From NCBI GenBank assembly GCA_038496445.1, contig JALMLS010000268.1, positions 310,001-374,000 of the forward strand: 64,000 bases of DNA, in the 5' to 3' direction. The position numbers were made by a program, and so were the translations under genes. The stretch is from Trichosphaerium sp. ATCC 40318. Taxonomy: Eukaryota > Protista > Tubulinea. This document shows, one piece after another, positions 54,501 to 60,600 of the stretch; within the stretch, counting starts at the first letter, position 1; the number at the start of each line of letters is the position of its first letter. The notes below the pieces were generated by a model that saw only the letters and a program-made list of their open reading frames with translations, was not told the origin of the DNA and ran no database searches.

Positions 54501-56284
54501 TCTGCAAAGCGAGGAAGAACAGCTGGTACAATATTTGCTAGGTTAGGTCCCATTTCAGCAACACATCCTTCACCAATCTGTGCCAAAGCGATTAATCCAG
54601 CACGTCTGTGCTTCCAGTTTCCATCCGAAAGCAATTTTGGTATTTGATCGAACATGATAGGAATAATTTGTTTGCCACCACAGGCAATAGACAAACGATC
54701 TAGATACTCTTCAGCAATGTTCCAGTTGGTATTTTCTAAATTATTTCTATCATCTTCTTGCGTGTTCCATTCAGCTACATCTTCCTCGATTTCAAGCATC
54801 ATCGAGATAAGAATACGTAATGTATTTGCAAAGTACCCTTCAATGGCGCTTGCAGTTTCGCCCTTGTCGCTTTCAGCGATTGAAATAAGGAATTCGGTAC
54901 TTGATTGACGAACATCTAAAATACCAGTGAGGTCCAATCAATCAAAAAAAAAAAAGCAAAACGACGTTATCATTTCTTTTGAAAGGGACATTAAACGCAC
55001 GATCGTCTAATTGTTTGGCGTCGGATATTTTTATCATTTCCGCAATAATTGGTTGTAAATGGAATTTCAAGAAAGCAGGTGATAGCTCAGCCAAATCTGA
55101 GAATAGCTGAATTGCTTGTTTTGCAGTGTCTTCATCGTTCATTTGTAGTGCCTTTGAAATAATCTAGAGCATTATTAGTTTTTTACGCCAAACACTGGGG
55201 AAGAAGGAAGAGTACGCACGCTCAACATGGCAGGTAAATATTTAGCCAATTCTCTAACTTGCTCAACAGAATCGCAAAACTGCGTTGCGTAGGCAAAGGC
55301 GGTAAACGCTTGCAAACCAGACCTTACATTAGCATCACCTAATCCTGAAACCCAAATAGGCGTCAACTGTGGAAACAACGGTTTTAATTTGTCGCCCATG
55401 TACGCTACGAGCTTCGAGTATATGGTCATTGCGGCCTAAAACAAATAAGAAGGAGTGACAGTTGCTGATGCCGAAATAGTTTAAAACCTAAATCAGGTGT
55501 CTACGGATGTTCAAATTTCTGGTGTAAGCGCAGTAATTCAAGCACAATCAAAATAGATTGATGACATACCTCACGATGAGCAGGATTTGGGGATCGTGAG
55601 TACTCGACTAGAAACGGAAAAAGTTGATTCCACTCGCCTAAAATAGTTAGCAGAGGTACAACTAGGTGATAAGCTTCACGGCTTTTTTGATTGAGCATAA
55701 AAAAAAAAAATTGATTAATAACCAAATCGGCTTGGAGCCTCGTTTACGCATGGAATTAATTAAAACATCCACGAAAGGCGTTACAGATAACCATTTTAAC
55801 GAACTCTATTTGTACGCACCGTTTTTACTAATAGCCACCATAACCATAGCCACACATTCTGTTGCTTGTCGTAGAACGTTGGGGTTAGCCTCATTCTTGA
55901 GAACTAGCACTATTTTAGTGTTTTGAACTTTACACGTTTACTAACCCTCTAACAAGGTGCCCTGTGTAAATGCACGCGCTTCTGCGTCCAATTGCTCCCA
56001 CATTCCCTCTTTCACAATTGCACCGCGCAGCAAAATGGCGCCAAGCGATCGTATCTAACACTGTAGTCATAACCAATGGCGCTTATTTAAAAATGCGAAA
56101 AAACAAAGTACAATAAACAAACCTTCAGGTCAGCGCTTCGCTTTGTAGCTTCTAACAATAACATGACAATTGCTTTGGGATTAGACTGTCGAAGCTTCTC
56201 GAACATGCTTTGGGCATTATTACGCGCAGCATTGTCTGCGCTGGTTATATTCGCCAATAGCTGTTCGAATTGTTGAAACTCCAT
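51542..56284 (-). CDS. IPO5: Importin-5 / karyopherin beta-3
   Basis: HEAT repeats; LRGKALECVSLVG..VGKERF, WVRICRCLGKDFVPYL, FYLHEGVRIA, ATDNAISSVGK. Confidence 0.93.
53211..53283 (-). other. U12-type AT-AC intron in IPO5
   Basis: ATATCCTT donor, TCCTTAAC branch 10 nt from the 3' end, AC acceptor; removal restores KFYLHEGVRIAS. Confidence 0.92.
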
Positions 56285-56407
56285 ACGAAACTTTTGATGT
56301 GAGGCGTTTTGCGCAAATACCGCGTTTCAACAAGTTATGAATTTTATTTTCGGTTGGTTTTTTTTACAAATTAAGTCGCAATCAAATCTATCAATGGCCT
56401 CTTCTGT

Positions 56408-57200
56408 TTACGAGCATTGGGCACTTTTGTAGAGCGTTTGCATTGGTATTAGTACAATAGGTGTGAATTTTCTCATTGGCAGCCTGTCAGTTCGCTTTTG
56501 CTTTAGATCCCTGCATCGCGCTTTAAAGCATACCCCGAGCTTTGTTCGTGGCGTGAAGGCAGAGCGAAAGCGTGGGCGCTGGGACTGTCTCGTATCCTTT
56601 CTCGTGCTTTTTCTCGTGCCATATTTGTATTTTAGCGCGGCTTTTGACCCACGAAGCATAAAGTCGGCTTCGTAGTACTCTATCTGCATTCGTGCTTTGG
56701 CGCTGTCTCTTTCAGCCGCTCTGCGGGTGGCATAGTCGCGGTGGTCGTGGTGATTCGTATAAACAACATCTCTATTCACAGGTAAGTAAAAGGGTTTCTA
56801 ACAAAAAAGAGCAACACGTACGCTAGATCTGGGTTCTGGCCATTTCTTTGAACTGACTTTTTCGCCTTGCAACCTACGCGCTGTTATCTCTTTTTATTGG
56901 CTATGGGGTTTAAAAGTACCTGGGTGAAGACACTGGTAGTAAAATCTCTTGTACTCGGCGCCTTTGGGGAGCCTACGAAAAAGTATCAGCACGTGTGTAT
57001 GTCAATCAACACCTTTGCGAGGGTATGTGTACGTACCGCCTGCCAATATTCTTCCAGGTTGCGCCGTCAATACTGAGGTCTGCTGTGTGAGGTACATTCA
57101 CTCTAACTTTGTAGGAGAACATGCCTACGAGCCCTTTTGGTAGTTGAAAGCTAGGTTGAAGGTCCTGTGGTGAGTGCATGGTATTTGAATGTCCGAACAT
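56408..57200 (-). CDS. WRKY-domain protein with variant heptapeptide
   Basis: Three GT-AG introns; spliced DGATWKNIGRRLPKGAEYKRFYYQCLHPGCKAKKSVQRKCQNPDLADVVYTNHHDH (C-X4-C-X23-H-X-H). Confidence 0.82.
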
Positions 57201-57689
57201 GTTAAGAGGAGTGGTGGGCTTTGTGTTTGTGTTCGTTTTTTGACATAGAGATCGATAGTCAAATCAATCACTCGAAACTTAACATTCGTGTGCCTGAACC
57301 AGGTCATAAGTTCGTTATACTACGCCACACATACAGTTGAAAGTTACTGTGCCAAGAAGGGAACGTGTAAACAGCATTAATAGGTGCAAAAATGTTGGAT
57401 GTTGGTGCTACAGTTGCACGTGATTGACAATTCTTCATACGGATAAACTACTTCTCAGATTGACCTCAGCTGAAAACAGTGCTGAGTAAAAGGGTTACAT
57501 AAGAGGTGTACGTCCGAGTTATCGCTTAAAGTCATAGTCGGGTTTTTGATGCTGATAATATTAAACGTTTTGTTTCGTTTTTTCATGCCAAAATCGTACT
57601 TGTGCACAATATAATTATTAACCACCAATTTGTGATTCCGGCAAGAGCACTTCTATCAATCAGTGCGCTGACTAGTTAGGAGGTTGCGA

Positions 57690-60600
57690 ATGGAGTTCGC
57701 CACCCTTTTGCTTGGTAAAGCGTCAACTGGCAAACTTGCTCTGGCGTATGCGTTTGCTAGACTGAGCGACGCGCCAGGTACTAATTGGCAGTTTTATACT
57801 TGCTTTTACTAAAATTCCTTTTCTAACTAACCTCTTTGTAGTTGCAAGCGCAGAGAGAAATGAAACAGGAGCTGTACTGGAGCATCGCGTACTTTACAAA
57901 GGTCGAACGTATACGCTCGGGATTTTGCCTTTTGTGCGTTCAGTAAGCGTTTTTAGTTCTTAGTAACTCCGAATAGAGAAGTGAGCGCGATTCGAAATTG
58001 TTTTCTTGTGTCATACAAGATTGCCAAGGTTTTGTATTGACCTATTCGACACACCACAGGAGTACTTTCACGGCCGTCACAAAGTATATCAAGTTAATTG
58101 AAAAAAGCAAAAACATGAAAGTTGCCGTTCTGCCAGTTGTACGTCATGAACAACTTCAAAACCCTCGCTTGGCTAACGCGTTTACCCTACCTTAGACTTT
58201 AGTGGCGCACGACTTTGATGACGGCGACACTGACAGCGAGTCGCCCAGAGGAGAACCCGTATCTGTTGATGAAGGTAAAGCCTTAGCAAAGGAGCATGGG
58301 ATTAGTTTTATTGAAGCGTGTGCCAGCACGGACGTACGTGAAGCCCAGATTGTTTAGTTGATTTTTCTCCTTTTTTGTTGTTTTATTGTTTTCTGACATT
58401 TTTTTTTCGTATTATAGTTCAATGTTCGAGAGACCTTCGTCGATGCATTAGACCAAATGATTGAATTTGAATCATTGGGAAGAGCAAAAAAAAATAAAAA
58501 GAACAGGCGACACAGACGGAGGAAATCTGCTCCCGAAAACAACCACCTACGTACGGTAGGGCACGAACGTTGTGCCACAGCTACAGCGCCGTTGACAGCA
58601 CGCAATCATAGTGAAGAACCCAAAAAAGTAACAAAAATTGGTACGTCATAGCATTTTGTACATTTTGTATTTGACCAACTGACTCACCCTTAAAGCACGT
58701 TGCCATTTTGCAAATAAGGTAGTAGAAGTAACTTTACCGCCATCAATTACATTTTTGAGGCTTCACAAACAGCTAGAAGAAAAGTAAGCCTAGTTTGCAG
58801 AGTAGTTGTAAATGTGATTTTTCTAACGTTATTAATTGAGGTTTCAATGCAAGCTCAATTCAGCAGTGCAATACATACCAGCAAAAGGTGGCGGAATGAG
58901 AGTAACGAATGATGCCTGTACGTATTTGCCATCCATTTACCTAGGTAATCCAGACTAACACTTGCGCTATTAGTACTACAAATTGTCTTAAGAAGTTCGG
59001 ATGTAATCAATCTCCGCTTGGAGCGCAAAAATGTGACAAGGAGAAAAGCATCAGCCAGAAGCACTTTCAACAATTCACCTACTGTTCGACGGCCACCTGT
59101 GTTTCTTCGTGATACTGGCGCCAAGCCGTTTTCATTGTCAACCACTTCACTCCCTATAAATAGTAGGAGGCCTCAAAGTGCCCGAGACAACTTTGAGGCA
59201 CCAAACAGTCCAAGAAGTAAGTATAGTATAGTCTATTTTTTTGTTTGAGCCACGAAAAAGTTGATGGTTTATAAAAAGGTAAAACTGGTATACAAAGACG
59301 AGGCGTCTGGAAAAATAGATCATCGTTTCAGCGTGACACACAACGGCAATTACCTAAAAGTCATCGTCCCTCTACTCAGCCGCGGTCAGATCAACCAATA
59401 AACGAAGCAAAAGGGCAGCCTACTGACAAACAATCATCAAAACCAAAAACACGTGAACAACCTTCACAAACAATGGTTGTATCGCGTTCTTATGCAACGT
59501 GCGTAGGCCTTTATTTATCCACATACAAACCTAAAATTGCTTTAGGCTAAAGGATATGGCATTAGATAACTCGTCGGTCAGCCTGACCAATGACAGTCAG
59601 TTGCGAAAAGCGATTGAACTACTAACAGCTGAACGATCCTTTATAAAAAATCTAAAAATAATGAGAATGCTGATTGAGCCTTGTCGCAATCAACACTTAT
59701 TGACACCACACGAGTTGTATTCCGTATTCGCCAACATTGAAGACTTGATAGAGCACCACGACAAGTTCTTTGTAGTGCTTGAACAATGCACAACTGGTCT
59801 TCTTGGTCCGGACGGTATCGCCGAAGGGTTTGTCAGCAATACAGCTTTCTTTGAGGACTACATCCCCTATGTTAAGAATTACAACACGAGCACTACAGCG
59901 TTGCACTACTACCTCAAAACAATTCCAAAGTTCAGAGAGCTTGTCGAACAATTCGAAAAAGCACAGAGGAACTTAAAAAACCCTCCTTTGGACGTTCTAC
60001 TAGCAATGCCTGTCAGACATATGGGCGAGGTATGGACATTAATTCTTCTTTTTTTCCCCATCCTTGGTTGTTGCATGTGCTGACTTAGAGTTTTTTTAAT
60101 AGTACTGTATCTTGCTGAGGAGTTTGCAAAAATACAATCCACCCTCTAATTTTAGCTACAACACTACAGCCAAAGCAATCGAAAGATGTCAAAATTACCT
60201 GGACAGATACAACAAAGAGATTGACTCACATGCCACAACACAAATGAAGGAACTCATTCCTGTTATTGAAGCGATAGACCACGGCGTAGATCTCCTTGCG
60301 TCGGGACGTTATCTGATACGAAAGGGGTACTTACGGCTGGACATATCCATAAAACCCCGGCAAACAGATCAAGTGGAGCAACATTTACAAACCATCAACG
60401 AACACACCAAAATTTTTACATATCTATTCAACGACGCATTGGTGTGTACTACGGAAGGCAAACAAAAGCACAAGTACCTTGAGACTTTACGTCTTAAAGA
60501 AGTGATTGCAGTGCGTTACGGTGACCGCGATGAACACAATTTTTTCAAGCTGGACATGGCTTCAGCACAGTGGGTTTTTTCGTTGCCAACTGTTGAATTG

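Follow-up and report, generated by a model that had tools for sequence, protein, structure and literature searches.

WRKY proteins form a standard, plant-centred family of transcription factors in which the DNA-reading strand is nearly invariant. Within the N-terminal domain of AtWRKY1 (AtWRKY1-N), residues K3, Y4, Q6 and K7 of this WRKYGQK strand touch bases of the W-box, K7 is termed absolutely conserved, and either of the substitutions Q6A and K7A abolishes binding (PMC7026264). WRKY genes are also scattered outside plants, and whether their distribution reflects gene transfer or an ancient origin is still debated (PMC4350883). Those of Amoebozoa, among them Dictyostelium and Acanthamoeba, are mostly group-I-like (PMC4350883), and those of Mucoromycota (‘fungi incertae sedis’) carry a WKNNGNT signature together with a C-X6-C-H-X3-C zinc motif of unusual spacing (Rinerson et al. 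2015, PMC4350883). A published draft genome of the amoebozoan Trichosphaerium totals 70.87 Mb over 710 scaffolds; its G+C content is 37.7%, its introns average 75 nt, and single-cell transcriptomes accompany it (PMC10521059). WRKY proteins receive no mention in the genome paper (PMC10521059).

The gene described here lies in a 64,000-nt stretch of Trichosphaerium DNA with a G+C content of 41%, which was analysed as a whole and is referred to as the window. Its WRKY domain shares length and order of elements with the plant domain (Pfam PF03106; AtWRKY1-N in complex with the W-box, 6J4E, and the C-terminal domain AtWRKY1-C, 2AYD). The elements held in common are DG-x-x-W, the glycine of the strand, K-G-x5-R-x-YY-x-C and the zinc motif C-X4-C-X23-H-X-H, and the sequence HP.CKAKK of the gene closely resembles HPNCKAKK of AtWRKY1-N. 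It differs from the plant proteins in its strand, which reads WKNIGRR, in a glutamine at the equivalent of R135, in its amoebozoan host, and in belonging to a small protein with a basic tail. Like the WKNNGNT proteins of fungi (PMC4350883), the gene is non-plant and single-domain, with a W-K-N-x-G strand far from WRKYGQK; judged by the published description, it is set apart from them by the classical C-X4-C-X23-H-X-H spacing and by a strand that ends in R-R rather than N-T. The group I-like WRKY genes of Amoebozoa (PMC4350883), and a canonical copy found elsewhere in the same genome, belong to the same supergroup. However, the group I-like genes have two domains with WRKYGQK (PMC4350883), whereas the family of this gene comprises at least 11 single-domain loci with a changed strand.

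Gene model and transcript

Reading of the reverse complement with local splicing placed the gene on the minus strand, between positions 57200 and 56408, with four short exons when a 52-nt internal segment (the exitron, discussed below) is kept (Table 1). Removal of three introns leaves an open reading frame (ORF) of 210 aa from the ATG at 57200 to the TAA at 56408. The joined exons read DGATWKNIGRR-LPKGAEYKRFYYQCLHPG-CKAKKSVQRNGQNPDLA-DVVYTNHHDH; divided at the exon borders, the domain is DGATWKNIGR / R LPKGAEYKRFYYQCLHP / G CKAKKSVQRNGQNPDL / A DVVYTNHHDH, and each join falls at GT..AG borders. All of the motifs that had been reported from the sequence-only reading (DG.xW, WKNIGRR, RxYYxC as RFYYQC, GCxAKKxVQR as GCKAKKSVQR, and C-X4-C-X23-H-X-H) are present on this strand. 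Numbered along the exitron-retaining ORF, the zinc ligands are C69-X4-C74-X23-H98-X-H100, a spacing that fits the WRKY pattern C-X4-5-C-X22-23-H-X-H, with the joins confirmed by cDNA. Downstream of the domain, the 110-aa tail encoded by exon 4 is basic (30 K+R against 9 D+E, pI 10.9). The WRKY frame is free of stops for 176 codons, a run with a chance probability of ~1.6e-4. The introns presumably lie at positions other than the PR-type or V-type positions of plant WRKY genes.

Table 1. Features of the WRKY-type gene and its transcript, in window coordinates
Feature	Position	Strand	Description
Transcript	56406..57202	-	cDNA contig span; template-switch oligo joined at 57202, contig end 56406
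Exon 1a	57125..57200	-	ATG 57200-57198 to GC donor; encodes MFGHSNTMHSPQDLQPSFQLPKGLV + first base of next codon
Exitron	57073..57124	-	52 nt, GC-AG; kept form encodes (G)MFSYKVRVNVPHTADL(S)
Exon 1b	57037..57072	-	encodes IDGATWKNIGR + two bases of R55 codon
WKNIGRR strand	57056..57037 + base 56972	-	variant DNA-reading strand
Intron 1	57036..56973	-	64 nt, GTACGT..TAG, phase 2, splits R55 codon; joint 56971/57036 (cut +1)
Exon 2	56920..56972	-	encodes (R)LPKGAEYKRFYYQCLHP(G); first zinc ligand Cys69 = 56932-56930
Intron 2	56919..56874	-	46 nt, GTACTT..TAG, phase 1, splits G73 codon; joint 56871/56918 (cut +2), both runs
Exon 3	56822..56873	-	encodes (G)CKAKKSVQRNGQNPDL(A); second zinc ligand Cys74 = 56871-56869
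Intron 3	56821..56772	-	50 nt, GTACGT..TAG, phase 2; joint 56771/56822
Exon 4	56408..56771	-	DVVYTNHHDH, His98 56749-56747, His100 56743-56741, 110-aa tail, TAA 56410-56408

Evidence for transcription was drawn from contigs of two small public RNA runs (X1 and X2), which represent one sample at low depth and were mapped onto positions 55600-58000 of the window. The contigs derive from cDNA, as GT-AG joints are present in both the WRKY gene and the neighbouring importin-like gene, and their identity to the window is 100%. Loose letters at the contig ends were taken to be a SMART-type template-switch oligo. This oligo adjoins the contig 2 nt ahead of the ATG, and the opposite contig end lies 2 nt beyond the stop codon; the WRKY-type mRNA thus appears to be almost without untranslated regions. 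Both ends nearly coincide with the borders given by the sequence-only reading. One contig of run X2 enters intron 1 unspliced (56944-57028), with the template-switch oligo at 57028 and greater depth than the spliced contig, indicating that unspliced or partly processed RNA was present in that library. The WRKY-type gene is real and expressed. Each of the three GT-AG introns that had been proposed from the letters alone corresponds to an exact cDNA joint in runs X1 and X2, and the junctions give a frame that contains all four zinc ligands, where splicing that broke them had been named as grounds for rejecting the gene. The earlier gene model therefore stands with respect to its three introns and their borders, but not in its first exon, from which the cDNA cuts a further 52 nt.

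The importin-5-like gene is also encoded on the minus strand, in window positions 55600-56284. Its N-terminus, MEFQQFEQLL.., begins at 56284, 124 nt downstream of the WRKY stop codon, and cDNA of run X2 shows GT-AG joints skipping 182 nt (55636/55819), 42 nt (55903/55946) and 68 nt (56054/56123).

Membership of the WRKY family

The sequence-only reading had assigned the gene to the WRKY family, an assignment borne out by paralogues in the same genome, by solved structures and by the exons of the gene itself. When seven paralogue exons were compared with PF03106 (gathering score 21 bits), all seven matched, with a best E of 6.3e-16 and a score of 44.8 bits for the paralogue shared by contigs C92 and C132. 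The same exons gave no match to other DNA-binding families (FAR1, FLYWCH, MuDR) at E up to 1. A profile of the family matched solved WRKY domains, including AtWRKY1-C (2AYD, E 4.6e-15), 6J4E, 6J4G, 2LEX and others, and in these alignments the variant heptad aligns directly onto WRKYGQK.

Taken singly, exons 1, 2 and 4 of the gene gave no match to Pfam WRKY, and exon 3 reached 14.9 bits (E 0.032, model positions 31-48), below the cut-off of 21. A profile was built from the seven Pfam-positive paralogues, with this gene excluded, and used to search the 3,988 stop-to-stop fragments of the window. The three exon fragments of the gene ranked first to third and were collinear, with exon 1 matching profile positions 8-44 (E 1.3e-8), exon 2 positions 41-59 (E 4.5e-5) and exon 3 positions 60-75 (E 0.009); the next-best fragment had an E of 1.9. 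The start of exon 4, DVVYTNHHDH, resembles the VVY..H.H of the paralogues. On these comparisons the gene is a member of a previously undescribed, probably lineage-specific subfamily of classical WRKY zinc fingers with a consistently changed strand.

A family of variant WRKY genes in the genome

A six-frame Pfam WRKY search of the 70.3 Mb, 642-contig assembly returned 12 matches over the cut-off on other contigs. This gene escaped the search, its domain being divided among pieces of 10 to 17 residues. The gene had been read as a lone oddity but is one of at least 11 loci, all single-domain genes, whose eight distinct heptads read W-x-[NQ]-[IVT]-G-[RNQ]-[RK]. These are WKNIGRR (this gene, contig C27), WHNVGRR (C202), WRNIGRR (C66), WHQIGRR (C180), WRNIGNR (C205, C292 and C51), WINIGRR (C92 and C132), WHQTGQR (C8) and WHQTGRK (C78).

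The nearest paralogue, that of C92 and C132, carries DGIEWINIGRRLPKNHKYKRFYYKCSFPRCQARKQVQLDSNDPQYL in one exon, with GRRLPK uninterrupted. This continuous stretch independently validates how the sequence is joined across introns 1 and 2. An intron at the position of intron 3 was present in every paralogue inspected and is followed by (R/N)-[DV]-V-x-Y-x3-H-x-H. Its presence at a matching place in the domain of all of them marks intron 3 as inherited from the ancestor of the family; introns 1 and 2 are private to this gene. For two paralogues separated by a dS of 0.21, dN/dS was 0.25 over 67 codons, a small sample.

Two pairs of family members are near-identical or identical copies on different contigs (C92:223737-223958 with C132:1162-1383, and C205:82474-82707 with C292:41066-41302), with 0 and 1 differences in 63-67 codons, and may represent uncollapsed haplotypes or very recent duplications. 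In the C66 paralogue (WRNIGRR; L005:1321-1674 and downstream) the finger ends in H-T-C-H, not H-x-H, and the tail is acidic (EEEEEENEN), in contrast to the basic tail of the gene described here. The sole classical WRKY gene found in the genome (G000:C209:75872-76374) is of the canonical two-domain type; both domains contain WRKYGQK and are interrupted by introns. It is possible that this gene is the ancestor of the variant family.

The DNA-reading strand

The WKNIGRR strand differs from WRKYGQK at five of seven residues, keeping only W1 and G5, and lies outside WRKYGQK and its known close variants; the same departure is found in all 11 family loci. Mapped onto AtWRKY1-N, the substitutions include K3 to N, Y4 to I, Q6 to R and K7 to R, and the base-contacting positions of this protein are K50, N51, I52, R54 and R55. 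Phosphate contacts are kept, with R64, Y66 and K77 corresponding to R131, Y133 and K144 in the contact list of AtWRKY1-N (PMC7026264), and one contact residue is changed, the equivalent of AtWRKY1 R135 being Gln68. Because the base-contact positions K3, Y4, Q6 and K7 are occupied by N, I, R and R, an altered DNA specificity with a target other than the W-box TTGACY is plausible. The arginines at the Q6 and K7 positions could still read guanines. A literature search with six of the variant heptads found no paper.

A 52-nt exitron in the first exon

Contigs of both runs show a fourth splice, which cuts 57124..57073 from within the first exon proposed by the sequence-only reading (joint 57072/57125, with plus-strand ends CT..GC). 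No contig in either run covers the removed segment, although both runs are of low depth and stem from one sample, and rare isoforms are lost from contigs. The depth in the bin 57058-57138 is wholly explained by the flanking parts of the exon. Frame bookkeeping indicates that, once the 52 nt are removed, the ATG at 57200 and the WRKY domain lie in different frames, and this ATG opens a 71-codon non-WRKY ORF. The WRKY frame of the spliced form is ...T-stop(TAG)-LSTTKRARSIDGATWKNIGRR... and lacks any AUG ahead of the domain. Since exitron splicing throws the ATG out of frame, the 210-aa protein requires the retained isoform. In-frame deletions would result from splicing to a CAG acceptor at 57083 (42 nt) or at 57080 (45 nt), and neither form was present among the contigs. 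Rescue of the spliced frame by stop-codon reassignment or by an upstream exon was considered and rejected, as the WRKY frame contains no AUG from the 5' end of the cDNA up to the domain and meets several stops further upstream.

The segment encoded by the 52 nt aligns with the lead-in to the domain of the paralogues, F[ST]YK-x4-[VL]P-x7-DG. Using the profile from which this gene had been excluded, the contiguous fragment scored 32.6 bits, compared with 11.1 bits when only the sequence following the exitron was scored; the 16 residues of the exitron by themselves scored 6 bits, which is not significant. A GC donor and an acceptor at the corresponding places are absent from all paralogues, and the splice signals of the 52-nt segment are for this reason likely to have arisen locally. 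The most fitting term for the segment is an exitron confined to this gene, and the retained form is the homologous coding form.

Exitrons are introns inside protein-coding exons (review PMC10985678). Like the exitrons described there, the 52-nt segment lies in a coding exon, contains no stop if kept, encodes conserved protein sequence and has splice-site-like ends, here GC-AG. It differs from them in that only the spliced form was seen, in contigs of two low-depth runs, and in that 52 nt is not a multiple of three, such that splicing destroys the ORF and does not trim it.

Relatives in other organisms

A profile search of 1.84 billion representative sequences gave 4,418 matches. The best 150 of the 4,418 were all multi-domain canonical WRKY proteins, and none of these 150 contained W-x-N-[IV]-G. 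The ranking sums scores over domains, an arrangement that hides single-domain relatives scoring below 96 bits; the members of the family themselves score 102-126 bits. Among the matches listed, no outside protein matches the profile as well as the family's own members.

Word searches were performed with three queries. The exon-4 ORF (123 aa; targets of 68-215 aa) yielded no relatives of the tail, the C92/C132 paralogue (targets of 74-234 aa) yielded no candidate, and the family alignment (targets of 144-458 aa) yielded four plant two-domain WRKY proteins only. In the ESM Atlas the nearest clusters were plant WRKY proteins at 0.80-0.82, values that serve as a lead only. Two queries against viral contigs gave no match, and the sequences suggest no giant-virus origin at close range. 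Metagenome contigs searched with the C92/C132 paralogue likewise gave no match. Two metagenome tblastn matches to FVRLYYRC (L027 and L028, obtained with the L002 query) lacked a W..G strand and had stops alongside, and were dismissed as chance.

Discussion

The locus is probably an expressed gene of a classical WRKY subfamily, encoding a functional factor whose output is limited or gated by the 52-nt splice. A protein produced from the retained form would consist of a short N-terminus, the FSYK..VP lead-in, one WRKY domain (approximately residues 45-100) and the basic tail. By homology with the solved plant domains, the WRKY domain would be expected to fold as a zinc-bound beta-sheet through Cys69, Cys74, His98 and His100. 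The strand W49-K-N-I-G-R-R55 of this zinc-dependent sheet would then enter the major groove of DNA, with a predicted preference for a site other than TTGACY. Splicing of the exitron would both delete the FSYK segment and shift the start codon out of frame, and only mRNA that retains the exitron, or that uses the in-frame acceptor at 57083 or 57080, would be expected to yield WRKY protein. The regulatory meaning that we infer is that exitron splicing holds the output of the factor in check or gates it.

A somewhat unlikely, though possible, alternative is that the gene is a transcribed but decaying copy, in which the 52-nt splice is constitutive, no WRKY protein is made and only the 71-codon ORF is left, with the intact frame reflecting a recent loss of function. 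Such decay is consistent with the exclusive presence of the exitron-spliced form in both runs, a form whose WRKY frame lacks an AUG and is preceded by a TAG, and with splice signals that occur in no paralogue and so point to a local origin; at least 10 other family loci could moreover cover the function. However, no stop interrupts the frame over 176 codons and three correctly spliced introns, a run that chance would rarely produce, and all four zinc ligands are intact, as are the W, G, YY and KK residues of the core. The 5' end of the transcript precedes by 2 nt an ATG that shares the frame of the domain only if the 52 nt are kept, and low-depth contigs of one sample cannot show absence of the retained form. 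It is very improbable that the exitron-spliced mRNA is itself the functional product, either through a 71-aa peptide translated from the ATG at 57200 or through a WRKY protein that lacks the FSYK segment and starts at a non-AUG codon. That this is the sole isoform in the contigs, and that the WRKY frame contains the near-cognate codons AGG and ATT a short way before DG, would fit such a product. Nothing in the family supports the 71-aa frame, however, which overlaps the conserved WRKY frame; splicing would remove a segment that is conserved in paralogues, and non-AUG initiation is pure conjecture.

The remaining alternative concerns the origin of the domain, which the sequence-only reading had suggested could be domesticated from a Mutator-like (MULE) transposon. 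Babu and colleagues are said to have described, in 2006, WRKY-like domains at the N-termini of MULE/FAR1 transposases, and the near-identical copies of some family members on different contigs would also suit a captured WRKY-GCM1-type domain. The evidence gathered here argues against this origin. The paralogues match Pfam WRKY alone, with nothing found for FAR1, FLYWCH or MuDR, and the zinc spacing is the classical C-X4-C-X23-H-X-H. An exon-wise search of the genome for the MULE transposase PF10551 gave no match, no terminal inverted repeats were found around the gene, the locus is single-copy with no second DNA copy, and the gene is situated 124 nt upstream of an importin-5-like gene. Capture from a MULE followed by domestication is thus very unlikely.

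The favoured reading of an expressed WRKY gene with splice-limited output can be carried further, to an amoeba-specific WRKY clade (W-x-[NQ]-[IV]-G-R-[RK]) with a new recognition code, in which Arg replaces the otherwise invariant Lys7 and Asn/Ile replace Lys3/Tyr4, and of which this member is switched on and off by a frame-shifting exitron whose splicing cuts away part of the conserved lead-in. We regard this extended form as doubtful. If true, an amoebozoan transcription factor would be regulated through unproductive splicing.

The ORF listing and the exon-wise Pfam scan both missed this gene, so that counts of small domain families easily fall short where members are split by introns. A clean conceptual translation may differ from what the cell makes, as the frame-shifting exitron warns. 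The family adds data on the history of WRKY genes in Amoebozoa. A marine amoeba with at least eight distinct variant genes of one domain each, beside a single canonical two-domain WRKY gene, constitutes a natural experiment in re-coding the specificity of the fold.
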